A stretch of DNA of 63,897 nucleotides, the filler included, from Salisapilia sapeloensis CBS 127946 (taxonomy: Eukaryota > Protista > Oomycota): the NCBI GenBank assembly GCA_023334545.1. It is 6 parts of 6 records of this genome, joined end to end, with 100 filler letters (N's around TTAATTAATTAA, not from the genome) between each part and the next. Parts side by side here need not be neighbours in the genome. Positions count along the whole stretch, not along the records: positions 1 to 21,440 come from JAADVB010000282.1; 5 more parts are not named here. One strand, written 5' to 3'. The notes under the pieces were generated by a model. That model did not search any database. It was not told the origin of the DNA and was given only the letters and a program-made list of their open reading frames with translations. Position 1 is the stretch's first letter; every line of letters starts with the position of its first letter. Shown here one piece after another: positions 1 through 21,440 of the stretch. Made by a program: the position numbers and the translations under genes.

Positions 1-1
1 G

Positions 2-535
2 CTACATGTCGCCTCCGTCGCCGCCAAAGTCTCCTCCGTCGTCTCCACCTCCGCCAGCCTCCATGTCTCCCGGATTGTCGTTATCTAGAGCTTCGCCCAG
101 AAGCATACCGCCGAGCAGTCCACCTCCGACGCCTGCTGCCACGCCACCCATGCCACCGCCTCTTCGTCCGCCTCCGTAGCCTCCGTAGCCCGGACGTCCG
201 TTACCGTAGTAGCCTTGGTTCATCGGCTGGGCGTACACTGGCCTCGCCTGGGGATACGCATTCTGAGCATTGTATGCGTGGTAGTTGCCTTGGTAGCCGT
301 GCTGCTGGCCCACAGGCTGGCCGACCATGGGACTCGGCATCTGCATCTGCTGTCGTTGCATGAGCATGCGTTTCCGTCTCCGTCGGACCATATACAAGAC
401 AAGGAGCATGATCAAGAATAGACCGAGTGTGTACGTCCACCAGTAGCCCGAGTTTGCACCATAGATATACGCGTTGGTCGGCTGGATGGTAACCACCACC
501 AAACCGATAGCGAGCGCCAGAGAAGCTTGAACCAT
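2..535 (-). CDS. Single-pass membrane protein: signal peptide, one TM, Gln/Tyr/Pro-rich tail, glycine-zipper and Gly/Asp-rich end
   Basis: Complete ATG-TAG ORF of 177 aa. Hydrophobic N-terminus, TM (WWTYTLGLFLIMLLVLYMV) followed by RRRRKR, then GGMGGVAAGVGGGLLGGMLLG and DDGGDFGGDGGDM. Confidence 0.8.
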   Translation of the reverse strand: MVQASLALAIGLVVVTIQPTNAYIYGANSGYWWTYTLGLFLIMLLVLYMVRRRRKRMLMQRQQMQMPSPMVGQPVGQQHGYQGNYHAYNAQNAYPQARPVYAQPMNQGYYGNGRPGYGGYGGGRRGGGMGGVAAGVGGGLLGGMLLGEALDNDNPGDMEAGGGGDDGGDFGGDGGDM

Positions 536-775
536 CGTGCTTGCTACGATCCAATTCGTATTATGACATTCTCTTCTTGCCGAATTAAAAAATTACCACA
601 ACGATTCCGAAGCCATCCGTACGGCGTGGGACAGATAGTTCCTGAGACAACGCCCGGTTCGTTTGGTTTCTTATCTTTTTCGTTTGTAGGTTATTTATAG
701 ATACGATATAGGTACAAAATTAAATAGTAAAGGTACTTGTGACTCAGGAGCTTTTTATTTTCTTGCTTAGTCGAC

Positions 776-3701
776 CTAGACAGCAGGTCCGAGACGCTCG
801 AGCACAGACTTCTTCTTCGGAGGAGTGTCCTTGGCGTCTCCACTCCCTCCGCCTCTTTTCCTGCCTCGGCGTCGGCGCTTTCCATCTTTTTCCTTTTCTT
901 TCTCCTTCTCCTTCTCGTTGTCCTTTTCCTTTTCCTTGTCTTCATCTTCACGACGTTCCACTCGACGTCTCGGCTCTTCACTCTTGTCCTTTCGCTTCTC
1001 TTCGTCACGACGCTTTCCATCTCGTTTCTTCTCTTCGTTCTGCTTTTCAGCATCACGCACTCGACGACTCACTTCACGCCGTTCACGATCTGGGCCACGA
1101 CTACGCTCATGCTCTTGTCTCGACCGACTCGACCGATCTTCTCTCCTCTCCTCTCTCCGTCCTCTGTCCTTACTCTCCCTCTCCTCTCGACGTCCAGACT
1201 CCTTACTCGCTCTTTCCTCCCGACGATTTCGATCTTTACTCTCTCTCTCCTCCCGACGACTCGAGTCTCTACTGCTTCTCTCGTCCCGACGGCTTCGGTC
1301 TCGGCTCGTTCTCTCGTCTCTCCCCCTCTCTCTGCTCTTTCTCTCCTCACGACGACCGCGATCTCGACTCGTTCTCTCCTCCCGACCTCGGTCTCTGCTC
1401 ATTCGCTCCTCCCGTCGTCCACTCTCTCTGCTCTTACTCTTCCTTCCTTCCTCCCGACGACTACGCCCCGGACTCTTACTCTTCTCCCGACCCTCCGGCT
1501 CCTTACTCTTCTCCCGACGCTCAGGCTCCTTACTCTTCTCCCGACGCTCAGGCTCCTTACTTTCGCCCTTATCCTGCAAAAAGTCGAGGTCAATGGCTGG
1601 CGCAGCAATCTTCTCCACATCCACCTCCTTCTCCTCCTTGTCTCGATGACTACGCCGTTCCTTGGACTTGGATCGCTTTCTGTCTCTCGACCGATCCGAC
1701 CACTTGTCTCTCGACTTGGACCTCTTCCTGTCTCTCGATCTCGAGTTCGATCTCGACCGACGCCGGTCTCTCGACTTGGACCTCCTCCGACTCGCACTCC
1801 GGTCCTCTCGATCGTATGAACCTCTCCCTCGTCCACCGAACGAAGGCATCGGACCGTCGTACCATGGCGGAGGACCACCATAGTACTCTGGCGGAGGACC
1901 AAAGTACTCTGGATGGCCAGGGGGCGGGCCAAAGTAGCCAGGTGGAGGCATGTCGCGTCCTCTACCTCGTCCACGACCACGACCTCGTCCACCCCATGGT
2001 CCATCGAACCATGGCGGACGAGGGCCGTCGAACCAAGGCTCAGGAGGACCGTTAAAACCAGGAGGGCCACGCGGCGGCCCCCACTGCATGGGAGGCACAG
2101 CGTTCGCCGGTGGCCCTTGAACAGGAGAAGGAGACTTAGGATCGACAGACACAGGTGGTTTCACTTCCGGTTTTTGTTCAGGAGAAGTTTGGGTAATTGG
2201 CGCCGGAGCAGGCGCTTCCATCGGTTCATCGGCAAAGATATCTCCACCAAACTCATCCTCCTCTTCCTCTTTCTTGTCTTTCTTGATTTCCAGCGTCGCG
2301 TCCGCACTCTCCGCCGCTCGCCTCGAGCTCGATGCAGCTTCTTCCGCAGCCTTTTGCTTGGCTAGAGCCTTCTCCTCCGCCTCCTTCACCAGCTGATCTC
2401 GCTCCTGCTGCTCCGTCCGAGCGCGTTGGAGGAACTCATTGATGGACGCCTGGAGGACTTTGTTGGCCAAAAGACTCTCCGGCGACATGTTCGGTGTCGA
2501 GCACAACGGACACGTGAGGTCTCGGGACACAAGAGCGTCTCGCAGGCAGTGGTCACAGGCAGATTCTTGGCAGCAAGGAATGAGTACAGCGTCATCCATC
2601 AGCCGCTTGCAGATAGGGCACGCGAGATGCGCCGGGGGATTGGCAATGTACTGGTCGAACGTGGCGGAACCTCCGGACTGGGCGACCAGCTTGCCAAAGT
2701 CCTTGCTCTGAGGCTCCACAACCGCGAGACCGCCCCACGGCGCACTCACGACGGTCTTTCCGAATCCGCTTGGAATCTCACTCGTGTCACTCACAGCCTT
2801 CATGAACGACTTGGGGATCCCAGTCTTGGGCTTCACCGTATGCCGATCGTACTCTGGATCACCGTTCGTCGGACAGTTCTGGATGTAGTGTCCTGGGACG
2901 CCGCAGCGGTAGCATCGATAGTTTGGAGGAGGCGGACCGGTGACTTGCTGGCGCTGTCGGTCGCCTCGACCTCGACCGTTCATCTGCGGACTGCCAAAGG
3001 AGTTGTCTCCACGACCTCGACCTCGACCGCCACTTGTGTAGTAATTGAGGACCTTGTCGGCGTTGCTTCCCGTGGCAGACGTCCATGTCTTGTTCCCGAG
3101 ACGAGCGCTGCGCATGTCTCCAGCCTGCTCCGTGATGGACTCAATGGCCGCAAGCTCTTCTTCCATCGTCTGCGCGCCTTCTTCTTGTGCACCGGAAGCG
3201 TCTCTGTATCACAAGATGATCAATAACCATTCTGACGTAGATACAGAAATTCGTTTTTCTTTTAGCAAGTTAAATAATATCTACATAAGACAAAACGGCT
3301 TGAATAAAAAACGCAACGTACGCTTGGCCAGACTGGGGTTGCACCGGGGAAGCATTGGCTGCAGGTGGGTTGACTGGAGGTGGGGCAGACGGCGCCAAGG
3401 GAGGCGAGACGGCCGCGGCGGCAGCTGCCTCGGCCTTCATCCGCGCTAAGAGACCACTGCTGGCGTTCTGACTGGGTATGCGCTTCACTGTGACGCTCGT
3501 GTTGCGTGGTAATTGCATGTTTTCGTCGTCGTAGACCTTGCCGCTTTGAGCGTCCGTGACGACGAGGTCAAAGTCCGTGCCCTTGTACAGCTTCTTCTTG
3601 TCGACGATCGCCTTCTTGAGATCCAGGATGCGGATCATCGTTCCTGGGAACGTGACCGTGTCGAACTCCTTGGCGGCTTTGAATTTGAAATGGATCGACA
3701 T
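776..3701 (-). CDS. RBBP6: RBBP6/Mpe1 homolog (DWNN ubiquitin-like domain, CCHC zinc knuckle, RING/U-box, RS/RE-rich tail); 2 exons
   Basis: Exons 3701-3322 and 3203-776, phase-consistent GT-AG intron, 935 aa. MSIHFKFKAAKEFDTVTF (DWNN), CYRCGVPGHYIQNC, CPICKRLMDDAVLIPCC...CPLC. Confidence 0.95.
1474..1560 (-). repeat. 27-bp tandem repeat, about 3.2 copies, coding KSKEPERRE inside RBBP6
   Basis: ccttactcttctcccgacgctcaggct is exact at 1501-1527 and 1528-1554, with a variant at 1474-1500. Confidence 0.9.
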
Positions 3702-4334: not shown

Positions 4335-6504
4335 ATGGCAGAACCCTCACTTCCTCGAGGAAACAAGGAAAACGGGGGCACCAACCGATCATCACCCTCG
4401 CCATCGCCTCGAAGGCGACACCGTCTCGATAACTCTTTCTTTAGTCCTCGTCGATCTAGTGTAGCTTCATCTCCTCCCATTGGATCAAGAGCGCCTGTTC
4501 AAACCCCCGTGAAGCGGGCACAAACGAGTGCTCGACCGCCTGCCACGACTCCTCGCAGGCGTCGCATTCATCCTGTTAGTGGCAACGGCGCGAATGGAGA
4601 CAGTAAAAAGCGATTGGACATGAAACCTTTAAGCCAGCCCGATCCTGTGGACGACAGTCAAAGGCCAATGTCAGGAAAGTCTTCGGCGGAAGTACAGGAA
4701 GTAGTGTTTGAAACCGTGGTGGGTGACAACGGGCATATTACTTATATCGAGTATGCCAAAGGCAAATTTCTCGGCAAGGTATTGTGAGTTTCATTCAAGA
4801 TGGTATCTAGTTGCTCATATTGAAGATAGGGAGGGTTTGCCAGGGTCTTTGAGATGACAAGAGTAGACACTGGACAAGTGTATGCGGCAAAAGTCGTTCC
4901 GAAAGCGTCTCTCGCCAAGCCCAAAGCAAAGGAAAAGGTACTTTGGACTATCTGAGTGCTGTATAAATGATCTTTTAACATGCATTTGGTAGTTTACGAC
5001 CGAGATCAAGATCCACAAGACGCTATCCCACCCCAACGTCGTCCACTTTGATCACTTCTTTGACGATGAAGAAAATTCATATATTTTACTGGAGCTTTGT
5101 AAATGCCAGGTAGAACGATGTTGCTACTAGCACCATACGCTCGTATACTAAAGCTCTGTCTAGAGTATGGCCGACCTAATACGCCGGCGGAAACGCATCT
5201 CCGAGCCCGAGTTGCGCTATTATTTACACCAGATCCTTGTCGGCGTTCAGTACTTGCACTCTCAACTCGTCCTCCATCGAGATTTAAAGCTCGGCAACTT
5301 GTTCGTACACGACGGGATGCAGGTCAAGATAGGAGACTTTGGTCTTGCCGTGCGACTCGACAGTATCCTCGATCGAAAGACGACCATGTGTGGAACACCC
5401 AACTACATTGCGCCCGAGATCCTCGCGGGACAGAAAGGTGACGGACATAGTTTTGAAGCAGACGTCTGGTCCATCGGCGTCGTCATCTATACGCTGTTGA
5501 TCGGGAAGCCTCCGTTTGAGACGAAAGAGGTGAAGGACACGTACAAACGCATCAAGGCAGTGGACTATTCCTTTCCACACGATATTCCCATTTCAGATGA
5601 AGCAGAGCAGCTTATCCGAAGTATATTGCAAGTCGATCCGGCCAAGAGACCGACACTGGAGGACCTCTTATCCAGTGACTTTATGCACGGCACCATGCCG
5701 GCGTCCTTACCCAAGTCAGCTCTCTTATACACACCAAGCTCTTGTCGTGTGACGACGGATCGAAAGCAACCGCCTGTACAACGCCCAAAGACACCTGAAG
5801 CGCCCAAGGCGAATGTACCGGTGAAGGAGTCTCTCCTCCACGTCTGCAGGTACCTCGAGCAGGTGTACGAGTCTCGAGTAACTGCAGAAGTTGTGGACAT
5901 GGACAAGGCGACGCTATGGCTGTCGTCGTGGGTGGACTACACGACTAAGTACGGCATGGGCTATACGCTCACGAATGGTGCTGCTGGTGTTTACTTTAAT
6001 GACTCTACCAAGATGATCTCGACACCAGACATGAAAGCCTTTGAGTACATTGAACGAGGGTCTTCGGCATTGGAAGCGAAGAGATGTAGGTACCAAATGC
6101 GCGTGTACGATCCGTCGTTAACGAAGAAAGTGACGATTATGAATCACTTTCGAAATTACTTGGTCGATGGGAAAGACTCAGATGGACACGACCGACTGCG
6201 TGTGCATTTGGGTAAACGTCCGGCACCAGAGGATGAGTCACTGACGTTTGTGACCAAGTGGGTCAAGACCAAGCATGCGGTCGTCTTCTGTCTGTCGAAC
6301 GGTAGTTTCCAAACCAACTTCCATGACCACTCGCGCCTCTTGATCTTGAATGACGGGCGGACGGTCAACTTTTTAGATCGCGACGGAGACTTTATCGTGA
6401 AAGCCACGTACGATGCCGTCCACGGTGGAGACAGGAAGGACTTGATGAAGAGACTGCGGTACACGAGAGACACGTTGCAGCAGATACTCGATAGCACGCG
6501 GTGA
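4335..6504 (+). CDS. PLK1: Polo-like kinase (kinase domain plus two polo boxes); 4 exons
   Basis: Exons 4335-4778, 4830-4937, 4993-5109, 5164-6504. LGKGGFARVF, HRDLKLGN, DFGLA, RKTTMCGTPNYIAPE; polo box WVDYTTKYGMGY and KWVKTKHAVVFCLSNGSFQTNF. Confidence 0.97.
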
Positions 6505-6686: not shown

Positions 6687-7430
6687 ATGAATTCACCCGC
6701 TGTTGTAGCTGTCTGCGCTCGGCACCAACTGGATGATGGTATCACGCAAGACACGATCTGCAGTTTCCTCGATGCTCCATGGACATGGACCTTGAATGCG
6801 GCGGCTCTGAGAGGGTGCTACCACTTGGTCGTCCGACTGCACCACAGATACCCAGTGCCCTTCGATCACTGCAATTCCGATGCGATGGACACTGCCGCCG
6901 AGTTCGGACACACGCGAGTGGTTCAGTTTTTACACGAAAATCGGATAGAAGGATGTTCAAGCGACGCAATGGATTTGGCAGCAAGCAACGGCCACTTGGA
7001 CACTGTCAAGTACTTGCATGAACACCGGAGTGAGGGGTGCACGACAAACGCAATGGACATGGCGTCTGCTGGAGGACATTTACAAGTGTTAAAGTGGCTT
7101 CAAAGGCATCGAAATGAAGGCTGCACCGTCGACGCGATGGCAAGCGCAGCAGCCAATGGCCACTTGGACGTCATGAACTGGCTTTACCATGTCAAAAAGC
7201 TCCCCATCACGTCTCTCGTGCTCAAACTTGCGTCTACTCGAGGGAATACCAAAGTCGTCCATTGGGCACTGCATCGTGCCGATTTGGGCGAAATCAACGA
7301 CGCCCTCGTATACTCCTTCTATAGTAGTAAACTAGATGTCGTTCGTCTGCTGGAAAGCTACCGAGAAGAACGAATGAAGGGCTTGTACGCAGAGAGGGAG
7401 GATGTACCCAATATCTACTTGAATCTTTAA
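6687..7430 (+). CDS. Oomycete-type degenerate ankyrin-repeat protein
   Basis: Intronless 247 aa ORF with repeats of EGC(S/T)x(D/N)AMDxAAxNGHLDxVKxLH. Confidence 0.9.
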   Translation: MNSPAVVAVCARHQLDDGITQDTICSFLDAPWTWTLNAAALRGCYHLVVRLHHRYPVPFDHCNSDAMDTAAEFGHTRVVQFLHENRIEGCSSDAMDLAASNGHLDTVKYLHEHRSEGCTTNAMDMASAGGHLQVLKWLQRHRNEGCTVDAMASAAANGHLDVMNWLYHVKKLPITSLVLKLASTRGNTKVVHWALHRADLGEINDALVYSFYSSKLDVVRLLESYREERMKGLYAEREDVPNIYLNL

Positions 7431-7486
7431 GAGTCGTTGCGTATCTTTTAAGTTCAAGAATCACTTGACCAGTCGCAAAGTGAACG

Positions 7487-10158
7487 ATGCGCTGCGAGTA
7501 CTGGCTCCATATATATATCCTAGCTTGTTTAGCTGCTCTCCCATTAGTATTAGGGTGGAGAGAATGGACGTGGAAGAACTCGACGGGGCCTGGGACTCGA
7601 CGAGGTCACTCTTTAAATGTATATGGTACGCAGCTCATTGTTTTCGGTGGCCGAACGGAGGACTCGACGAAAATCCATTCGCCCAAGTCATATGAAACCT
7701 ATGAAGTGAATGGGTCGATTGAGTTTATTGCATACGAAGCAAACGCCACTGAACCGTTCGAAGTACCCGTAGCAGTTCTCTTTAACGATGTGTGGAGCTA
7801 TGATATAAGTATATGATTCGCAAATCTTTATTGTCTACTTGCCATGTATTCACAATTGTAAGCTTGTAGATTGCACAAGATATGCGGATGAAGCATGTGT
7901 TGACAAGACTTGGGTGCAACTTCGAGAAGGAGCGGACTGGGGAGGATGCAGGATTGTATTTGGAGCGCATGTTTGCTCACATCCGTCGGAGCGTTGGTAT
8001 CATCGAGCTGAGGTCTTCGATGACAATACTATGATCGTCTACGGAGGCTTCAGTCCGTCCTGCAGTGACTATTGCGACGATATGTGGTAATATCTAAACA
8101 GAATAAAAATCCAATTCCTCTCTTATCGAACGGAAACCTAGGCTCTTCGACTTTACGGATAACTCATGGACCGAGCTCATGGAAATCGGTAACTCATTCT
8201 TACAACCATCGCCAGGCAAACGTTTCAAGTTCTCCAGTGTTGTGCTGGGTCAACTCATGTACATCTTTGGTGGCTATCGACTATGGCAAGGATTTACTCA
8301 CGAGAACAGCGTGGAGAATGATTGGAGTGACTACAGTCGAAAACCACTCGGTGGATACCTAAATGATCTGTGGGAGTACAACAAGTCTAGCAACAGTTGG
8401 AGAAATTTAACAGAAACACTGGAGTGTCCAGATATTGCAGCAACAGCTACCATTGAGGACATTGAGGTCGAATGCATAGTGACATGGCCACCTGCGAGAG
8501 CAGGACATGCCTCTACCGTGTACGAAGGAGCGATTTACATTCATGGCGGCTACCGGACATTCTTTCCTTACCCAACTACCACTGGAAGAGGAGCAGGTCG
8601 AGGCACTTTGACGGAAATTGGTGCAGGATTTACGCCGTATCCAACCTATCCGTATTATCTAGATGATATGTGGAAGTACAATCTTTCGACTAGAGTGTGG
8701 GAAAAAGTGGTTCTCAACGAAGAGCGCGATACAAGGAAAGAGAAGATGCCCTTAGCACGGATGGACCATAGTCTCGTGGCAGCAAGAGAAGTGTTGATTC
8801 TATTTGGAGGGTATGTCTCCAATTTCTACTTCAGTGACACTTGGATATACAACATAAGTACGTGCCTTTATCTTGCTACACTATGCATCGCTAATATCTA
8901 ATCGCTCGTAGCAAGCAATCGATGGGTAAAGGAAAAGACTTTTGTTTATCCAATTTATCCATCGGAGTGCACTGATGACCTCGAGCACCGGAAGCTGGAG
9001 CACAGTGGTGACTACAGTGAATTCGTGCTTCCGAGTGACTTTGTTCACTATGAAGAAGACGAATTTTACTTTAGTAAAGAGCTTCATTACGGTACACTTA
9101 AGGTATGGACATCTTCCAGTCCTTCCTGAAGCCTTTTATAACAACAGTGTTAGTTTTCTGTCTACGCAGATCCTACAAGAGGTACATTCGATACGCCAAC
9201 TTTTGTCAATCAAGCCCGACGACAAGCACCGGGATGGGATGGTTGTCGTCATCGCAATGACAGCCGAGAAGATCTCGACGATGAACTCCAATGGATGAGG
9301 CCATCTCAACGAGCTGGCCACCAAGCCGTATACCATGAGGGATATGACAAGGTTTTCATCTATGGTGGCTACGGATACGATATAGAACAGAGTCGCCGTG
9401 TCGATACTACATTCTCTGCCTGCTCTCTTGGAGATCTCTGGCAACTCGATTTAGACAACTGTCCGAAAAACTGCTCTCGGCATGGGCTGTGCCACTTTGG
9501 AAACTGCAGATGCAACGACGGATACTATGGTGTCGACTGCTCTAATTCGACGTGTCCCGGTACGTACTGCTATTATGACGAGATTGAGCCAATCCAGCAC
9601 TGTGATCACTGTTGCTTTTCCGGCTTTGAGCATCTTCCAAACAATGATTCGTACGTCGAAAATCTTCAAAAGTTCCCTTGCACATCGGCCAACTTGCATT
9701 ATTCGAATGGCATATGCGATGGCTTTGGCATGTGCATCTGTAAGCCGTCTTTCGTCGGAGATGATTGTTCCATTCGGGACTGTGGTAAAAACTGCTCTGG
9801 ACATGGATATTGCTCGGAAGAGTTTCCAAACGCTCGGTGCTTGTGTGATGAAGGATGGTTTGGCCAATACTGTGAACTCCGTACGTTGCCTTCTTCAAGT
9901 GTGTATTTCAATTGGTACTAAAATGAGTTTGATCTAGAAATGTGCGTGAACAATTGCTCGTATCCGAACGGCGTTTGTCTGAATGGAAGTTGCTACTGCT
10001 CCATGGTGTACGAGCCATACAACAACACGTTGGAATATTTTCCACTCATGGGTGAGGATTGCTCTTTCTTGATACCATTTGCTGGTGTCCCGATGGCTGC
10101 CAAGCTATCCTTCGTTGTAGCGAGCATTTCCATTTTTATCACGCTCGTAGTGCTATGA
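7487..10158 (+). CDS. Secreted or surface Kelch-repeat and EGF-like (tenascin-type) protein with a C-terminal hydrophobic anchor; 6 exons
   Basis: Exons 7487-7808, 7870-8086, 8142-8857, 8912-9091, 9170-9880, 9938-10158, all phases consistent, 788 aa. Signal peptide; repeated R.GH...FGG...ND.W Kelch blades; CPKNCSRHGLCHFGNCRCNDGYYGVDCS-type EGF units. Confidence 0.9.
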
Positions 10159-10394
10159 GGATACTTCGATTCGATCATGCTCAACCGTTCTATAGTAAAG
10201 ATAAGAGTCTACCTCCATTCGTTAAGCTGCAAATAGATTGTCTTTCCCGTGTCGTTTCATCTACCGCTAAATCAACCGTCGCTAACAATTGCTATTGTCT
10301 CGTTCGCACATTTACCAGGACAAGGCGCGCACCTCACACTTACGCTCGTGCGTACTACGATAAAAAGTGTAGATTTCTACTTAAGCTGGAATCA

Positions 10395-13221
10395 ATGTTT
10401 GGCGCGAATGGTTTCTACGGTGGTGGAGCTAACAAGCAACCTCGAAACCTCCTTGTCGACGAAGAGGACGATGAAGATTTGTACGAAGGCTTCAACTTTA
10501 GCATCGACCTTGCCCCTCCACAAACAGCGTCGAATGGATACCCTCCGTCGTCTTATGGAATGCCGCAATCACGAGGAGGCTTCCAGCCTCCACGCACAGG
10601 ATTTAGGTAAGCCTGATTCATGCTATAGGAGACGAAGTTCTTGCTAATCGATTTCGTTCTACTTCATGTCATCCTTTAAATTTACAGGGCGCCTCCTTCG
10701 CAAATGGGACGACAGATCCCTGGGTCCAGACTCGGGACTGGTATGCAGCCAGCAGGCGAAGCTCGGCCGATGACATCAGTTTCTGGTGCAGGTTTCTCGG
10801 TAAGTGCTTGACTTCTGCCTAACTGCTGTCGCATAGTGGTCACTTATGTCAATTAATAGTCGAACCCACGAACAGCAGCAGGCCAGCGTATGTTTGATCC
10901 GATGGGGGACTCTCGGCGGGCATCGGCTTCCCAGGCAGTGTTAGAGAAGACAGAAAATACACCAAAAGAAGTCGCTAAGGAGCTCGAGAAGACTGTAAAT
11001 TCATTAATTGAACAGTGTGCTGAGCTGACCCAACAAGGAAAGCTTGAGGATGCCCTAGCTTTGTCAAAGGATGCTGGAAGGAAAGAGAGGGCGTTTAATA
11101 AGCACTGTGAAGCGAATGGGCTGACGGATATGCTGAACATTGACTTAACATACGCCGTTTTCTTCAACCTTGCAAATACGTATGAGCGCAATGGACTTTG
11201 GAAAGAAGCGATCCAGGCATATACTCCCATCGTAAAGAACAAGCAGTACACCCAAGGCGGACGACTTCGTGTAAATATGGGGAATATCTATTTTAGCCAA
11301 CAACAATACCCGACGGCTATTCGTATGTATCGCATGGCACTCGATCAAATCCCCAGTACTAGCAAGGAAGTTCGATTTAAGATCAAACGAAACATTGGCA
11401 TCGCGCAAATTAAGCTTGGCCATTACCAGGATGCAGCATCAACATTTGAAGACATTATGGAAAGCCAGCCAGATTTCCACTCAGGCTTCAATCTGGTCAT
11501 TTGTTATTATGCGATCGGCGAGCATGACAAAATGAGACGAGGGTTTACCAACTTGATTACCATTCCCATGGAAGGAGGGTCGACGGAAGAAGACGAAGAT
11601 GAGGAGAATGCAGACGGTGCGATATCTTTATATGAAAACGAGGGCAAGTCCGAATCGGAGCAACGACCGATGTCATCCAGCGAGCAACGCCATCTCAAGT
11701 CGCTCCAGACAGATTCACTGCGCAATGAGATTCGGGCGAGACGTAAGCAAGCAATGACATATATTCTATTAGCTGGCAAGTTGTGTGCGCCAGCACTGGA
11801 CAAGAAAGATTGGCAAGCCGGATATTCATGGGTGATCGATACGCTCAAGCAAGAATCTCACGAAGGTCTTGCAAGTGAGATGGAAATCTGTAAAGCCCAT
11901 GTGTTCCTAAAGCAAAAAGAGTTCGATCGAGCGATCGATGTATTAAAAGCTTTTGAGAAGAAGGATCCAATCTATCGAGCGATGGCAGCGACGAACCTGA
12001 GCTATCTCTATTTCATTGAAGGTGACATCAAGCAAGCAGATAAGTACGCCACCATGGCAGTTCAACACCAACGGTACAATGCAAAGGCCTTAGTGAACAA
12101 AGGAAATTGTCTGTTTGAATTGAAAGAGGGGGAACGCGCGAAAGAGCTGTTTCTGGAAGCGATCGGTGTCGAGTCAGATTGTATTGAAGCGATTTACAAC
12201 CTGGGTCTAGCAAACGTTCGATTGGGTGTACTTGATGAAGCTCTTCAGGCATTTGAAAAACTGCACACGATCGTTCCAAGTGACCCAGAGGTTTTGTATC
12301 AAATTGGAAATCTCCACGACGTCATGGGCAATTATAGGAGTGCTGCCAAGTGGTTCAACATTTTACTATCAAGCTTGGGTGGAAATAGTTCCAACGGGAA
12401 AAGAGGAAAGGATGGGGCTGGAAGCCGGTACAGTAGCTCGAAAGATGTATCCGACCCGAATGTCCTCGCTCGGTTGGGTCAGATTTTTACCAAGGAAGAT
12501 GACGAAACCCAGGCCTTTCACTATCATCTGGATAGCTACCGCTACTTTCCGGTCAATCTCGACGTCATCTCTTGGCTCGGTGTTTGGTACGTCAAAAGTG
12601 AGCTGTACGAAAAAGCGATTCAGTTCTTTGAACGTGCAAGCCAGATCCAACCAAGTGAAGTCAAATGGCGACTCATGGTCACCAGTTGCTACCGCCGTAT
12701 GGGTGCATACCACAAGGCGGTGGAGTTGTATGAGCAGATCCATCAGGACTATCCAGAGAATCTAGAGTGCTTACGATACCTCGTCGCAATCTGCAAAGAC
12801 TTGGGGCAGCGGTACGATACATATCAAACAAAGCTTGTCAAGCTCGAACGAGAGGCTGCTGCAGCCGCTCCAATACCAAGTCAGCGGACACAACGTCCGC
12901 CAGATGAAGGGGTTGGAAGTGCCCAGTACTCTAGAGAAAGCAATCAACACTCAGATCGCGGAGCTTCCATGTATCGGCAAGAGGAACAGAATGACCAATG
13001 GCAGAAACCTCGAGAAGAAGAGTACGTCACTCCGAAACCGGCAGCAATGTACGATATGCGTCCAACGACAGCAGCTCGACCACGGACGGCTGCAAAAGGC
13101 GCAGCAACGAAAAACGATGGTACGCACTCGATATTTCTAAAAGTAATTCAGGAGCTAACTTGGCAGTACAGAAGCGGACGATTGGGGCGATGCGGATGTC
13201 GGGAACTTGCTTGGTGATTAA
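10395..13221 (+). CDS. IFT88: Intraflagellar transport protein 88 (TPR protein); 4 exons
   Basis: Exons 10395-10606, 10688-10799, 10860-13119, 13172-13221. GRLRVNMGNIYF, AATNLSYLYF, YNAKALVNKGN, QAFHYHLDSYRYFPVNLDVISWLG, EVKWRLMVTSCYRR; acidic end DDWGDADVGNLLGD. Confidence 0.97.
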
Positions 13222-14203: not shown

Positions 14204-15316
14204 ATGACGGCGCGAGATTCGGACATCAGACGTGTCTCCCACGATCCTCGCTACCGTCCTTATGTGCAACATCAAGAGATACATGTTGCTCCCTCAACTC
14301 ATGCAACAGCTCCTTCGCTTGCGCAGGTGCAAGACCCCACGTATCTCTATCCGCCGCAGTCTCACTTGAACGACAGATCACTGTCCATGCCTCCTTATCC
14401 AGGCTACGAGAACCCACCCATATATTGTGTCTATCCGGATGTGCAGGACGAAGAGCCTCTTATAGCCCAGTCTCGCCTCCCTCGAGACGCCTATATTACC
14501 TCCCACCCTCGTCCAGAGCAAGACATGTCCGTTTATCCAGGCTCTGCTCCAGCGATCTCTCTTCAAAGACCTCAATATGCTGTTGAGCAACGAGAATGCC
14601 GTCAGAAACGACTGGCATTCTTACAACACGTCTGGAAGCTCATTGTGTACAACATTGGGAACAGTTTATTAGGCCTTGTAGCTGCCTCCTTACTCGGTTC
14701 TGGACTTTGCATGGGTATATCCCTCATCCCAGTCTTCCTACTTGGTCTTCTCGTATTGAAATTGGTGCATCACATTGTGTATGAATTCGCTCGACTAGAT
14801 GTCCACCTGTGCAACTACCTTCGTCCTGCTGGAGAAAAGATTCTCTTGTCAACGTCTCCTGGGCAGCCATACAAGGAGAGACTCATGCCACGACTCCGCA
14901 ACTTTTCCCCGCTTTCTCTGATGGCGCTCATCTACTTTTTAACCGTCAAGGCAGCAGTCGCTTTCGCCAGCAGCATCAGTCTGTCCATGACCATGTCCGG
15001 CCTCGGTTTCCTCCTCATCGGACTCTTCGGCCATAGCGAAGTTGCGATCGACTCCCCATTTGGCAATGGAAGCGTTGACATGGCATCCCATCCATTGCAC
15101 TACTTTAGTCTCTTGCTTGCCGGCATGGTCATCGGTGTCGCCTTACTCTATCTAACAGCAGAAGTATCATGTCGTGCGACTCGGTTCTTTTGCTGTGAAA
15201 AGCAAGAGTACCCTTCTGTCGTCGAAAGAGACTGGGAGAGAGGTCTCTACCACGTCTCGACGTCCAGGAACTATGGAGCTGTACGCAGAGCAGCCGAACG
15301 TTCGAACTTTATATAA
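14204..15316 (+). CDS. Sensor-domain-like multipass membrane protein, paralog 1
   Basis: Intronless ORF, first ATG at 14204. Pro/Tyr-rich N-terminus; core LIVYNIGNSLLG...FARLDVHLCN...LSPLS-like...YFLTVK; ends RFFCCEK. Confidence 0.85.
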   Translation: MTARDSDIRRVSHDPRYRPYVQHQEIHVAPSTHATAPSLAQVQDPTYLYPPQSHLNDRSLSMPPYPGYENPPIYCVYPDVQDEEPLIAQSRLPRDAYITSHPRPEQDMSVYPGSAPAISLQRPQYAVEQRECRQKRLAFLQHVWKLIVYNIGNSLLGLVAASLLGSGLCMGISLIPVFLLGLLVLKLVHHIVYEFARLDVHLCNYLRPAGEKILLSTSPGQPYKERLMPRLRNFSPLSLMALIYFLTVKAAVAFASSISLSMTMSGLGFLLIGLFGHSEVAIDSPFGNGSVDMASHPLHYFSLLLAGMVIGVALLYLTAEVSCRATRFFCCEKQEYPSVVERDWERGLYHVSTSRNYGAVRRAAERSNFI

Positions 15317-15345
15317 GCATACAATCAAATCCTTTGTTAATCAAT

Positions 15346-16206
15346 TTAAACGACTTGTCTTGCGTTTGTCGCGCCATACTGTCCGCTAGAGCTAGGGTGA
15401 TTGTACTGATCTTCATGCACATACCGGTAAGTCTCGAACTTTTCACAGCAAAAGTATCGAGTCGCTAGACGAGAGGCACGGACGGCTCCGTGCATGATGG
15501 CGACGCCAATGACGAAGAGTAGACTAGCGCTAATGATGAAGAGGATAGCTCTGAAGAAACCTGTGTAGGCACTGCCGACGTCTGGAGACGTCATGGCACT
15601 GACGGGAATACCGAGCGCAATGGCTAGCGCGATGGCGCTCATGCACGCATTGGCGAATTTAATGGTACAAAAGTAGACGGTAGCGCTCATGGCTTTCAAG
15701 CACGGCTGGTCCAGCGTCGGTGACAGGCGTTCGTTCATTACGTTCACGAGTCCGAGGCGGTCGGGAAGACTCGTGTAGACTTGTTCTGCCGGTGGAGAGA
15801 CAAAGTTGTAGAGACTGACGTCCAGTTCCGCGAAAAAGTTGACGATATGGAGTAGGACACGGAAGACAAGGAGACCGAGGCAGCACAGTGGGAGCATGAT
15901 CGATCCCAATGCCACGCCGTGCCATAGCACCGTAAAAGCTGTAAATCCTAAGGCAACGTTGAGCGCGTGAAAGACAAACAGTCTCAGCGTATTGTAGACA
16001 TATCCGTCTTCACGTACGTCCCACATCCGAGACGGAGGTAGATAGCTTCCAGCACCATGTGCAGGAGGTTGGTAAGCATTTTCCGTATCATATGGGCGAG
16101 CGAGTGGTACGGACTCATTCTGGTGTTGGAAAGAAGGAGCGTTGGGCTCGAACGGTGGAGCCATCTCTGGCTCCTTTTTCGACGTTCCGACGGACTCGGC
16201 TTGCAT
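15346..16206 (-). CDS. Sensor-domain-like multipass membrane protein, paralog 2
   Basis: 286 aa ORF. FVFHALNVALG...LPLCCLG...FAELDVSLYN...YFCTIKFA...RYFCCEK. Confidence 0.85.
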   Translation of the reverse strand: MQAESVGTSKKEPEMAPPFEPNAPSFQHQNESVPLARPYDTENAYQPPAHGAGSYLPPSRMWDVREDGYVYNTLRLFVFHALNVALGFTAFTVLWHGVALGSIMLPLCCLGLLVFRVLLHIVNFFAELDVSLYNFVSPPAEQVYTSLPDRLGLVNVMNERLSPTLDQPCLKAMSATVYFCTIKFANACMSAIALAIALGIPVSAMTSPDVGSAYTGFFRAILFIISASLLFVIGVAIMHGAVRASRLATRYFCCEKFETYRYVHEDQYNHPSSSGQYGATNARQVV

Positions 16207-16358
16207 TTACGGCGTATAAATCACTCTGCGATGTTCTATCTCGAGGAATTCGAATGGATATTTCGCTTTGTGATTTTTTATGGTTAGCATGGTACACTAG
16301 TGGAACGAAAAAGATACCTTTGTTGAACGTGGCTATTTTTGATATTTAATGGTGCTAC

Positions 16359-17255
16359 TCAATATCTAGCCATGCTTCCATACGACATGCGTCCGGCATG
16401 GCCTGGCAGCGTCTCCACTTCTTCACTGCAGAAGAATTTGGTGATAACAGTGGAAAGCTTTGCGACGAAGAACATGAGAGAAATGCCGATGACTAAGATG
16501 CAGGCCATGATGATAATAAATGCGAGGAAGTGGTCGTGAATATCTTGATCGGTCACTCGATACCCATTCACTTCCACGTCAAATTCGTCGTCGGACATCA
16601 TCACCTGAAACATTGCTGGCGGCAATGATAGCACTAGGAATAAGACGATGCCACTCAAGATGCCAATGGCAAATTTAACCGACGCAAAGTAGATGCTGGC
16701 CATGATCGACAGTGGCGACACTTTCGACAGGTCTGGAGCCAAGCGGTAGCCATGGAAACCTCGCATGGCGAGTTCATACGGGACGTTCAGGTAGATATAG
16801 TCTTGAGGGGGCGCAACAAAGTTGGATAAACGCACGTCTACTTCAGCCAGGAGGCCAGCCAAGTAGATCACGACTCGAAATACCACGATGCCAAAGCAGC
16901 AGAGGGGAATGAGACCAATGCCGACACTTGAGCCGATGACAATAGTCATAAAGCCCAACATGCCCAGGCCGGCGTTTAAAATGTGGAAGAAGATGAGTCG
17001 TAAAATGGTCATAAAATATCCTCTTCTAGAGCTGTTGGAACTGGAAATATTCACCGAGTAGCCATGATCATAAGGAGGTGCGGAATCTGGAGCTACATAG
17101 TGACGGTTGGCGTGATAGGGTGGACGATCCACTGGCTGCGCTTCCAGTGGGAGTTGAGCTTCGTGGAACGACGGGTACAAATGCATCTGCTCCTCACTGA
17201 GGTCGTACGGCTGATTGTTTGGATGGAAACTACTACCTTTTGTCGGCTCGTCCAT
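16359..17255 (-). CDS. Sensor-domain-like multipass membrane protein, paralog 3
   Basis: Likely start MDEPTKG at 17255 (ORF is open to 17393). IFFHILNAGLG...IPLCCFG...LAEVDVRLSN...YFASVKFA...KFFCSEE. Confidence 0.85.
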   Translation of the reverse strand: MDEPTKGSSFHPNNQPYDLSEEQMHLYPSFHEAQLPLEAQPVDRPPYHANRHYVAPDSAPPYDHGYSVNISSSNSSRRGYFMTILRLIFFHILNAGLGMLGFMTIVIGSSVGIGLIPLCCFGIVVFRVVIYLAGLLAEVDVRLSNFVAPPQDYIYLNVPYELAMRGFHGYRLAPDLSKVSPLSIMASIYFASVKFAIGILSGIVLFLVLSLPPAMFQVMMSDDEFDVEVNGYRVTDQDIHDHFLAFIIIMACILVIGISLMFFVAKLSTVITKFFCSEEVETLPGHAGRMSYGSMARY

Positions 17256-17421
17256 TGCCGTAGAAGAGATGTGTGTGGTCAAATGCCAAGTAGAAAATGT
17301 CGTGACTAGGTCGCGGTCCTGTCCAGAACGACTTGACTTAGGTATAGCATGCATTCGAACGCAAATGCAGGTCTGTGTGATGTGCACGTACATAAATAAT
17401 CCAGCGAAAACATAGAGCAGA

Positions 17422-18080
17422 ATGGAAGGGGTACGAGATTGGAGGTTTGTCTACGAGTCTCTAGGGCTGCTTTGTGCATATATGAATGAATTTGATATGT
17501 TAGAGGCCGCACAGTCACGAAGGAATCACATGATCATGGTGACGCTGGCACATTCCAGGAAAGGAAGGAAACGTATGTCAAGGATGAATTTGGTCGAGAT
17601 GTGCTAGTAGAACCCCAGGATACAGCCAAAAAGGATAAAAAGGACAAGAAGGAGAGGAGGCGAAAGAGTCGTCATCGCTCAAGGTCTCCACCGCCTCATC
17701 CGACAAGCACTCCACCTCCCGCCGATCCATTTCGGCCACAAGTACTTTGCGTTTGCTGCATCGGATCTGGATCGAAAACTAATGACCATATATAGTTGGA
17801 CGAGCGACGACATCACGCAGAGCGTCGGCGGCGACCAAGTTCTCGTAGAGGTCGGAGTCGATCAAGTAGTCGTCGACAACGATCTCGTAGTCGAAGTCCA
17901 CACAGACGACGAAGGCGTAGTCGCAGTCGTAGCCGGAAGCGAGCGTCCAATGACAAATGGACACACGATGCGTTTTACAATCGAAGTCCGAGTCCAATGC
18001 GAGAAGTCGATCCATCCTATCATCCAGAGCCTCCAAGCTGGAAGTCGGAAGCAGGCGGCGTTTATATTCCGAAGAAATAG
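17422..18080 (+). CDS. Small Lys/Arg-Ser-rich nuclear protein with a conserved-looking C-terminus; spliced, 5' end uncertain
   Basis: Phase-consistent intron 17742-17795 joins KKDKKERRRKSRHRSRSP to RSRSRS...KWTHDAFYNRSPSP...SWKSEAGGVYIPKK*. An upstream intron starts at gtatgt near 17573 with a tagtag acceptor at 17605-17610. Start codon unresolved. Confidence 0.6.
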
Positions 18081-18838
18081 ATAGAGACAAGGTGTTTCTT
18101 TGCCGTTTAAAAAGCAAATGCCCGTTCGAGTCTACATGGAACAGATCCACATGTCATCTTCATAACAGGTCATTAGTAAAAGACTATAAAGATGAGGTAT
18201 CGTGGTTACTCTTTCTGCTTATGCCAGTGGTTGCATGTGCGCTAGCAGAAAGAAAATCATGCCTACTATCCAATGAAGCGTACGATTCTGCAAAAAGCCC
18301 TAGTTTTTTCTATCTTCCACAATGGACTCTTCAGCGAGTTCACCAGTTTATGGCGTAACTCTAGATGGAGCCATGAGATAGGGTGTGGAAACTCTGGCTT
18401 GTTGACTTTTTCCGACAGTGAACTTCCTATGTAGCCAGCTCTTCCTACTGCCATTTTCACTGTCCTCCGAGTGTCGCACTTGTTCCACAAATAATTTACA
18501 AACCTGTGCATACTCGGCAATGTACTCTTAAAGGTAGCTTATCATATCCACCGCATCCGCATGCTGGCGTAGCTGCAAGTTATTTCCATTCAAAGTTTCT
18601 TTTGATATCGCAAGCACAAGAGATATAGCTGCACTCGAACCAGATAGATCATGTTCAACATGCTCCGTCTGCTGCGCTTCTTCGCTGGATAGTACCAGTA
18701 TCCGCTGTCTCATCAGAACCCTCGGACATCTTCTACATAACAAAATTCCGCATTATCCAAACAGATATGGAAACTGATTTCCACGAAAAATTCACAGATC
18801 TACCTCGAATTTGTCGTCATTTATAAATATCACTCGTG

Positions 18839-19708
18839 ATGAAGAACGCCGAGAAGGACGTCGAGTACGCAGAGCCACAGCAGGCTACTCAGACTGATGA
18901 ACATACCTACTATGGTCCATACGACAAGTACCCCAGTGGAAGGGAGAACGGACGTCGCCTCGACACCATTTCACTCCGAGTGGATGAGCCAGTAACGCCA
19001 CGCACCCCGCCTGCAGACTATCATAATTATGGACATGCGTATGAAGAACCGCAGTACGAAGACTGCGAGTATCATCGCCGATCATTGCCAGTCCGTTTTC
19101 TCTTCTCCGTATTGTATTTATTCCTGAGCTTTGCAGAGTCAGTCGTTGCTTTCTGGATGACCGTTGCAGGTGTGATCATCACCCTTTGCCTCTTGCCCAT
19201 TTGCTGTTTGGGTGCACCAGTATTCCAGTTCCTATTGCTAGCCTTCAAAGCATTCGCTACTGTCGATGTGGAATTGGCAAACAAACTCTCGTCGCAAGGC
19301 GGTAAGATATACCTTCACCCGCATGTGGACAGCGGCTTCACAAGTGAATCACCGACATCATGCATGGGTCGAACATTTTACCTAACTCCCCGATCGTTTG
19401 GATTAATTGGCTACTTTGGCTTTGTCAAGCTTTTAAACGGTGCGCTAGGAGCATTTGCAATCTTCTGTGGCATTATCAGTCCAATCTGTGCGTTGTTGAC
19501 ATGGGGTGGCTCCAGCGGTACGATCGTCACATTCGACTACGACGAACACAAAGCCTCCTACGTTGCAGTCATCGCTGTCGTTGGGATATTGGGTCTCCTA
19601 GCCATCCCGTACCTCGCGAGGTTCACGAGGAAGATTACGAGGCAGTTTTGCGGTGCAGCAAAAGACTCTACGGAAGAAGGACGACGAAACACGTCCGAGA
19701 TGAGCTAA
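18839..19708 (+). CDS. Sensor-domain-like multipass membrane protein, paralog 4
   Basis: Tyr/Pro-rich N-terminus; LPICCLG...FATVDVELAN...YFGFVKLL...RQFCG. Confidence 0.85.
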   Translation: MKNAEKDVEYAEPQQATQTDEHTYYGPYDKYPSGRENGRRLDTISLRVDEPVTPRTPPADYHNYGHAYEEPQYEDCEYHRRSLPVRFLFSVLYLFLSFAESVVAFWMTVAGVIITLCLLPICCLGAPVFQFLLLAFKAFATVDVELANKLSSQGGKIYLHPHVDSGFTSESPTSCMGRTFYLTPRSFGLIGYFGFVKLLNGALGAFAIFCGIISPICALLTWGGSSGTIVTFDYDEHKASYVAVIAVVGILGLLAIPYLARFTRKITRQFCGAAKDSTEEGRRNTSEMS

Positions 19709-19968
19709 GCTATGACAAAGAATTGCATTTTATTTTACTACTCGTCTCTTGTCTGCTCTCGTCGACAGCACATCGATGGCTATCCGATTGTGTCAATCTA
19801 CATCGATGCGTCTTAGACACGTCCAAGACCTCTAGACCAATGTCGCACGCTTTTTCTATCCGACTAAAAGTGAGAGATGGAAACCTACTTAAACCTAGCA
19901 GCTATGTCTGCAGTCTGCTCATTCTCCGATTTGCTTTCCAGCGAACGCACACGAGACCTACAAACGCC

Positions 19969-20793
19969 ATGAACTCTTCTCAGCAACCTACACAGAAGAT
20001 ACCACCATATGAAGCTTGCCCGACTCCTACAGTCATACCGAAGGAGACACCTCCCAAAGCTCACGTCACTACGTCGACCACCATTCCGCTTGATGGCATC
20101 CTGTCACTCCCAATGCCGTATGTATCGGCGGACGACTTCGATCATAAAGGCTTTGTTGCGAAAGCTATCACTCTGATCATCTTTCATATTGTCAATGTTG
20201 TCATTGGCTTTGCTGGTTTCGTCCTCGCTGTCGGAGGTGTCGTCGTGGTGCCAATTCTGTTCTGTTTCTGCTGTCTTGGAGCACCAGTCCTCCAAGCCCT
20301 TTTCTGGCTCCTGAAAAGTCTGGTCGAATTTGACATCGCTCTTGCCAACATGATCACGTCCGAGAAAGACAAAATCCAACGCCACCCACACATTGAATGT
20401 GGCTTTACAGCCGAAGGCAAGGTTACCATGTTGGAAAAGCTGTTTTACTTCTCCGGGCGCTCGTTCGCGATGGTCATCTACTTTGGTCTCGTCAAGTTCG
20501 CTGTAGCTTGCATCAGTGCCGGTATCTTGTATTATGGCCTTGCTATGTGGATCGTTGTTTTGGTCACGAACGGAAAGCCTGATATTGGAATTGGTGGTTT
20601 ATCGTTTAAGCAGTACGGTATCTGGTATGTAGTTCTTGTGGCTGGAATGTCAATTGCTGGGCTAGTACTTGTTCCACTGCACGCATGGCTATCGCGAAAG
20701 TTGACCGAGCTTTTCTGTGGTGATACAGCTAAAGCGGTAGGACGCCATGACATTACCAGCATGAAGCAGACTATCTCGGAGGCATCTGTGTGA
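19969..20793 (+). CDS. Sensor-domain-like multipass membrane protein, paralog 5
   Basis: Likely start MNSSQQP at 19969. IIFHIVNVVIG...FCCLG...LVEFDIALAN...YFGLVKFA...ELFCG. Closest in sequence to paralog 4. Confidence 0.85.
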   Translation: MNSSQQPTQKIPPYEACPTPTVIPKETPPKAHVTTSTTIPLDGILSLPMPYVSADDFDHKGFVAKAITLIIFHIVNVVIGFAGFVLAVGGVVVVPILFCFCCLGAPVLQALFWLLKSLVEFDIALANMITSEKDKIQRHPHIECGFTAEGKVTMLEKLFYFSGRSFAMVIYFGLVKFAVACISAGILYYGLAMWIVVLVTNGKPDIGIGGLSFKQYGIWYVVLVAGMSIAGLVLVPLHAWLSRKLTELFCGDTAKAVGRHDITSMKQTISEASV

Positions 20794-21440
20794 AATTGAT
20801 AAAAAGGAATGTAGCTCATTTGTTTGCTTCGATTGCTTCGTTTATTTAGCAAATCTCGACTTCATGATATTAAAGCTCGAGTGGTAAAGTTGACTCTATT
20901 GTATTTGCTGGCGTCGAGTACTTGGCTTCGACATTGGTCGGAGACTGGAGAAACAAACGCCAATTACTGTTGGGTAAAACATGGAAATCTTGGCTGAGAT
21001 CTATTCTAAATCGATTGAACAAAACGACGAGAGCTTGTACGACTTCATGTGTTTAGCTGTATAATCCACGTCTTTGGACACAAGGCATTTTACAGTTCAC
21101 TTGTGTCGGTTGTTTCTATTGTATAAGGTTATACCATTAGCTTTCGTTAGGTGGAGAAGACTTTATAACTTTACGGCGTTCACGCAATGGACTGTTCTTG
21201 TAACAAACTAGCTGGCATACAACAATGGTCACTGAAAAGAATGAACAAGCAGTAAATCCACTATAACAAAAATCGTAGATAAAGTAAAATAGATTTACTT
21301 TCGAGCGCATGGGCTTTTGCCGTTTCCAGCCTTTGAGACTTGAAGATCATCTGCAGGACCATAGATACGAGGCTCACACTCACCTCCGCTTCTTCATGGA
21401 TACGAAAGAGATCGTTATCGCCAGGAACATTAATCGCTCA

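Follow-up and report, generated by a model that had tools for sequence, protein, structure and literature searches.

The module listed in Pfam as PF13796 (Sensor) has been described together with kinases of the HisKA_3 type (PMC10663231), and for the pair formed by HAAS and PadR, a role as alternative to two-component systems has been put forward (PMC11237479). Both settings are found among bacterial PF13796 proteins, in which the module is placed either N-terminal to the HisKA_3/HATPase_c parts of a kinase or C-terminal to a HAAS domain beside a PadR gene. The second arrangement is present in Pseudoalteromonas xiamenensis, where the gene for WP_208844952.1, a protein consisting of HAAS and Sensor, overlaps the upstream PadR gene (plasmid, L001 3355-4609). 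Kinase-less bacterial proteins of this kind (L001, L006-L085) have about 300 amino acids (aa) and carry the sensor module towards their C-terminus, and 448 matches with the loop motif LGVRMP were detected in genomes of many phyla. An experimental study of any PF13796 domain was not found in the literature search, in which two papers mentioned the module, both as part of bacterial surveys. Five genes located at positions 14204-20793 of a 63,897-nucleotide stretch of DNA from the oomycete Salisapilia sapeloensis CBS 127946 (assembly GCA_023334545.1; the whole stretch is referred to as the window) were analysed here. Their products share a core which is, at the level of the family, a true distant relative of the bacterial 'putative sensor' module, a conclusion that is well supported.

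Translation with eukaryotic ATG starts and alignment of the products revealed five open reading frames (ORFs), designated g1 to g5 along the stretch, with a common core of about 190 residues. Identity among the five paralogs is 20-33% (20-29% for each of the others against g1), and 13 core columns are identical in all five, including D..L.N, YF...K and T..FC. When positions 1-21440 were scanned in six frames with a family hidden Markov model (HMM) that had been built with the five window copies included, exactly g1 to g5 were obtained (E 1e-47 to 1e-67); g2 was also matched by independent homologues of other oomycetes (E 1e-66). A cluster of five paralogous ORFs with a shared core, as stated in the original prediction, is therefore present. 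The longer list of common motifs given there holds only in part: while the three motifs mentioned above occur in every copy, FH..N is absent from g1 and g4, the CC turn is replaced by IPVFLLG in g1, and in g5 the P-x-CC turn is without its Pro. Conserved residues retained in g1 are D, N, Y, K, T and FC.

With the Pfam profile of PF13796, which has 162 positions and a gathering cut-off of 28.2 bits, g4 reached 21.8 bits (E 2.1e-4, profile positions 1-155), g5 21.1 bits (E 3.5e-4, positions 3-152), and g2 12.1 bits (E 0.2, positions 4-159). A profile of 22 cores was searched against 1.84 billion representatives and yielded 162 proteins. Matches to PF13796 were seen in five of the 22 close and ten of the 44 distant members (best E 9e-15), and no other Pfam family was matched more than once among these sequences. 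Four relatives exceed the cut-off, P0153 (50.4 bits), P0057 (36.5 bits), P0072 (36.4 bits), and P0026 (28.4 bits). A tblastn search with P0153 led to a 'sensor domain-containing protein' of Pseudoalteromonas scoring 91.8 bits with PF13796, and bacterial alignments were composed of relatives of this protein and of 80 loci kept from the 448 matches, all of them confirmed in bacterial genomes. Comparison of 98 eukaryotic with 82 bacterial sequences by hhalign gave a probability of 95.3% and a P value of 2.2e-8 over 164 columns; with 10 bacterial sequences, P was 2.5e-6 over 169 columns. Reversed alignments of the same composition, used as controls, gave P values of 0.18-0.3. The Asp at the end of helix 2 in the oomycete proteins is aligned with the invariant Glu of the bacterial A-L-x-E-G, and the Tyr of helix 3 with an invariant bacterial Tyr. 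A search by ESM features retrieved oomycete clusters with PF13796 on 10% of the members. A word-index search with P0153 returned only this protein itself, tblastn of the bacterial domain against plasmids gave two records only, and nothing relevant was revealed when the five proteins were scanned together with two relatives against NCBIfam.

The AlphaFold model of the g2 core, with a predicted local distance difference test score (pLDDT) of 87 and a predicted template modelling score (pTM) of 0.80, shows four long helices arranged as two hairpins with short helices in the loops. In the ESM Atlas this model had a single clear match, an actinobacterial cluster with HisKA_3 on 100% and PF13796 on 95% of the members (template modelling (TM) score 0.70, 172 of 195 residues, root mean square deviation 3.4), the next best TM score by query being 0.37. 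Among solved structures, no match at E <= 0.001 was found by Foldseek in the PDB. The best Z score of VIA-align against 48,161 PDB chains was 7.5, for generic helical bundles lying within the stated background for helical models. Solved channels or transporters did not rise above background in the PDB fold searches, and rows for G protein-coupled receptors were insignificant (E > 0.8, TM about 0.2). With its four long helices and short predicted outer loops, the model also differs from known eukaryotic seven-transmembrane chemoreceptors, which are characterised by a bundle of seven helices or a ligand-binding ectodomain. The likeness to PF13796, originally proposed from the layout of the helices, is thus supported by sub-threshold matches over the full length of the profile, by relatives above the cut-off, by profile-profile alignment, and by the predicted fold.

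That none of the five carries a kinase also proved correct. Pfam scans of g1 to g5 gave no match to HisKA/HisKA_3 or HATPase_c at E values up to 10, and neither HAAS nor any other Pfam domain besides PF13796 was detected in them. A second domain is not seen in the full-length model of g2, in which residues 1-62 and 256-286 are below pLDDT 50 and are predicted to be disordered. The N-terminal tails of the oomycete proteins are predicted to be disordered and are rich in Pro and Tyr, and the C-terminal tails are short, about 30-45 residues in the five proteins. The output domains of the bacterial relatives were either lost from the oomycete proteins or never present in them. When longer relatives were scanned for extra domains, only the EF-hand of one gene model of Aphanomyces astaci was found (P0072, 670 aa), located at about 238-288 and upstream of the above-threshold PF13796 domain at 440-634. 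Either the two domains are truly fused, which would provide a link to calcium, or two gene models have been merged in this case.

Comparison with the two bacterial arrangements revealed common features as well as differences. With the module of actinobacterial HisKA_3 kinases, the oomycete core shares the predicted fold of four helices in two hairpins, a conserved acidic residue where helix 2 ends, and a conserved Tyr in helix 3; the profile match was obtained with a related subgroup of bacteria and is collinear throughout the domain. HisKA_3/HATPase_c domains follow the module in the kinases but not in the oomycete proteins, and disordered tails of eukaryotic style, a Cys-Cys pair within the turn of the first hairpin, and an FCC motif next to the membrane are found only in the latter when compared to the bacterial consensus. 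The subgroup responsible for the significant profile-profile match consists of the HAAS-linked proteins, and these are similar to the oomycete proteins in size (about 290-300 aa), in being kinase-less, and in having the module at the C-terminal end. Their N-terminus, however, is a folded HAAS domain coupled to PadR, whereas the oomycete N-terminus is disordered and without a HAAS match. The central-loop motif LGVRMPRR of the HAAS-linked proteins is absent from the oomycete proteins, and in place of the adjacent PadR gene of the bacteria, no match to a PadR-type regulator was obtained in the eight largest neighbouring ORFs scanned.

The five genes had been regarded as an orphan family, which is an overstatement, since the family is distributed throughout the oomycetes and some of its members already bear an automatic PF13796 label. 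Named homologues of g2, with 34-45% identity, come from Globisporangium, Pythium, Phytophthora, and Nothophytophthora and are annotated as hypothetical proteins, and family members were detected in Pythium, Globisporangium, Phytophthora, Peronospora, Saprolegnia, Aphanomyces, Achlya, and Thraustotheca. Every named protein among the 162 obtained by the profile search is from an oomycete. The literature search returned nothing on oomycete family members, their locus tags, or IPR025828. One distant member, P0116 (327 aa), is located on ENA/TARA ocean metagenome scaffolds (L003, L004), so that the family may extend beyond cultured oomycetes.

In a quick tree, g1 grouped with copy 6948 of Pythium oligandrum and others with a support of 91 in the Shimodaira-Hasegawa-like approximate likelihood ratio test (SH-aLRT). 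The g2 gene clustered, with good support, with copies of Globisporangium, Phytophthora, and P. oligandrum, with g3 nearby, and g4 and g5 were sisters (SH-aLRT 92) inside a third large group. From these groupings, at least three subfamilies seem to predate the split of Pythium and Phytophthora. The family is considered old in oomycetes because the window copies group with those of other genera and because members are present in Saprolegnia, Aphanomyces, Achlya, and Thraustotheca. The diversification in tandem that was originally proposed is old and not recent, as g1, g2/g3, and g4/g5 belong in the quick tree to separate groups shared with other genera. Another array is found in P. oligandrum (L002), with four tandem paralogs on the same strand and a fifth 7 kb away (6948-10873, 17606-18463). 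It is flanked by kinase, sugar-transporter, and methyltransferase genes, a neighbourhood different from that in the window. The array in S. sapeloensis may have been formed by old duplications and some lineage-specific ones.

Transcription was assessed with assembled contigs of the runs X2 and X4, two of four runs from one study; the four runs contain 83-85% of the sampled words. A DNA run from elsewhere contains the stretch in full and may be its source. Joints of the GT..AG type were present in these contigs only at 17442/17502 and 17741/17796, both in an Arg/Ser-rich gene located between g3 and g4, and these joints identify X2 and X4 as RNA. The contigs are free of joints over 14800-16237/16299, 16334-17442, and 18995-20795, and no joint falls inside any of the five genes. 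For g1, coverage is from 14800 to 15316, and at g4 the contigs start at 18995 (X2) and 19107 (X4), leaving bases 18839-18994 uncovered in both. The five genes are transcribed, and all are intron-free where covered, in agreement with the original prediction. In the Arg/Ser-rich gene, a contig of X4 (17415-17741) reads through the first intron, although X2 shows this intron removed; the X4 contig could stem from RNA that retained the intron or had not been spliced.

Several positions are nearly invariant in the family. Helix 1 contains such an Asn and the first turn Pro-x-Cys and Gly; helix 2 ends with Asp-x4-Asn, helix 3 has Tyr-x4-Lys, and helix 4 is followed by Thr-x3-Cys. In the g2/g3 subfamily, a C-terminal YG is invariant and FCCEK nearly so within otherwise variable sequence. 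In 98 family members, Lys and Arg accumulate in the segments preceding helix 1 and following helix 4 and in the central loop, whereas turn 1 has no charge and the other short loop (loop 3) is acidic. According to the positive-inside rule, positively charged segments are cytosolic. Based on this rule and on the charge distribution, both tails and the central polar loop are suggested to be in the cytosol, and the predicted outward-facing parts would amount to a turn of five uncharged residues and an acidic loop of about 10-17 residues.

From these features, it appears probable on balance that g1 to g5 belong to a transcribed oomycete family of PF13796-related membrane proteins without output domain, which would act as intramembrane transducers via their cytosolic tails. 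Because almost nothing would face outward, the signal would probably be read within the membrane; it could be the state of lipids or of the membrane, a hydrophobic ligand, or the transmembrane helix of a partner. The working site would probably be formed by the nearly invariant polar residues of helix 1 (Asn), of the end of helix 2 (Asp-x4-Asn), and of helix 3 (Tyr-x4-Lys). Output would probably be through partner proteins docking on short conserved motifs in the tails. Candidates for such motifs are the juxtamembrane FCC-E-K, which is also a candidate palmitoylation site, and the invariant C-terminal YG of the g2/g3 subfamily. Intramembrane-sensing kinases such as LiaS, BceS, and DesK have minimal extracytoplasmic loops and read the state of the membrane or transmembrane helices of partners. 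These kinases belong to other families and have two to five helices, and the oomycete proteins are likened to them in concept only.

A number of points weigh against this explanation. None of the five proteins reaches the PF13796 gathering score alone, and matching each core to the profile succeeded, below threshold and over the full length, with g2, g4, and g5, while g1 and g3 gave no match. With only the 22 close sequences, the hhalign comparisons were weak (P 0.015 and 0.003, about 100 columns), and the profile of these 22 sequences against a single bacterial sequence was without significance. The name 'sensor' is itself only putative for PF13796. Topology, palmitoylation site, and partner-docking motifs are predictions from sequence, the quick tree contains many unsupported forks and unnamed representatives, and the RNA support is from one study only and in the form of assembled contigs.

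The most serious alternative, though a rather unlikely one, is that the proteins are PF13796 homologues but not sensors. They could be structural, scaffolding, or trafficking proteins, or form an oligomeric ion pathway through the intramembrane Asp, Asn, Lys, and Tyr. Output domains of any kind are absent, polar and charged residues conserved inside helices are typical of channels and transporters as well, and functional data for the family were not found in the literature. On the other hand, the absence of a solved channel or transporter fold above background is at variance with such a role, and short motifs conserved in otherwise disordered tails fit docking of partners. In bacteria, moreover, the module is fused or coupled to signalling outputs, HisKA_3 in one case and HAAS beside PadR in the other. 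These contexts support a signalling role for the module; the function of the oomycete proteins is not shown by them.

Improbable is the proposal that the cluster is an array of chemosensory receptors for external cues, for instance in zoospore chemotaxis, with a new type of output. Kinship with a module named 'sensor', the tandem arrangement of diverged paralogs known from many receptor families, and the expression of the genes are in its favour. A classical chemoreceptor is nevertheless unlikely because the predicted outward-facing loops, one uncharged and one acidic, are tiny, too small for a ligand-binding ectodomain. Furthermore, the paralogs are old and kept across genera and not rapidly expanding, stage-specific expression was not seen, nor was any connection with genes for flagella or chemotaxis, and the genes nearby are unrelated. 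The designation 'chemosensory array' is therefore not supported. A chance or convergent likeness, with an oomycete-specific four-helix family unrelated to PF13796 being matched by its transmembrane composition, is very improbable and largely refuted, since sub-threshold individual Pfam scores and the insignificant comparison to a single bacterial sequence stand against P values of 0.18-0.3 in the reversed controls versus 2e-8, a collinear alignment over the whole domain, family members above the Pfam cut-off, and an independent fold search that picks out PF13796 kinases.

To return to the kinase-free transducer family, its distribution makes a bacterial origin by horizontal transfer plausible. 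A more far-reaching scenario must be regarded as doubtful. In this scenario, the PF13796 module would have entered an ancestor of the oomycetes from bacteria and would have been rewired to a kinase-free family for intramembrane signals with docking motifs in the tails, and these signals could be the lipid or sterol state, stress of wall or membrane, or a hydrophobic host cue.

The features of the region are compiled in Table 1. The cluster is not contiguous, being interrupted by the Arg/Ser-rich gene. For g3, the ATG at 17255 is favoured because the X4 RNA contig ends at 17284 and the N-terminus then aligns with the starts of orthologues. If this ATG is used, as is likely, it is 166 bp apart from that of the Arg/Ser-rich gene on the opposite strand, and the two genes may therefore share a divergent promoter. 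The start of g4 is uncertain because the first 156 bases are located outside the RNA contigs; the next in-frame Met, at 19157, would cut into helix 1. Other large ORFs of the window are ordinary eukaryotic genes for zinc-knuckle/RING, polo-type kinase, ankyrin, Kelch/EGF, and TPR proteins. For the polo-type kinase ORF, an upstream exon is expected from the position at which the profile match begins. The G+C-rich stretch at the beginning of the window coincides with the ORF for the zinc-knuckle protein.

Table 1. Genes and other features in and near the five-gene cluster of S. sapeloensis CBS 127946
Feature	Positions	Strand	Product	Remarks
g1	14204-15316	+	370 aa	Most diverged copy; ORF and translation; family HMM E 3e-57
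g2	15346-16206	-	286 aa	Disordered tail 1-62; four-helix core about 66-253; juxtamembrane FCCEK; C-terminal YG
g3	16359-17255	-	298 aa	Start is Met47 of an ORF extending to 17393; family HMM E 4e-67
g4	18839-19708	+	289 aa	g4/g5 subfamily; 5' end uncertain
g5	19969-20793	+	274 aa	Start MNSSQQ; ORF opens at 19360 and overlaps g4 in another frame
Arg/Ser-rich gene	17422-18080	+	181 aa	Introns 17443-17501 and 17742-17795 (GT..AG joints in RNA contigs); zero matches in Pfam scan
Polo-type kinase ORF	5167-6504	+		Pkinase and POLO boxes; match begins at kinase profile position 86
Zinc-knuckle ORF	776-3166	-	796 aa	Zinc knuckle and RING/U-box-like region
G+C-rich stretch	1-3000			G+C 0.53-0.59; strong negative GC and AT skew at 1001-2000

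The kinship of the oomycete proteins to PF13796 is solid, any signalling function being putative, and with some members automatically labelled already, the claim is a modest one for now. The family would offer a handle on PF13796 itself, for which neither an experimental study nor a solved structure turned up, and it could exemplify in clean form how a bacterial component for signalling is re-used in a eukaryote. If transfer from bacteria and rewiring as outlined above were true, a eukaryote would for the first time be seen to employ this bacterial sensor module, and a major group of pathogens of plants and animals would possess a class of receptors not recognised before. Oomycetes include major pathogens of crops and fish, and little is understood of the way in which they perceive their environment. 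A conserved, multi-copy, and expressed family without known output domain is a concrete candidate for an uncharacterised signalling route in these organisms.

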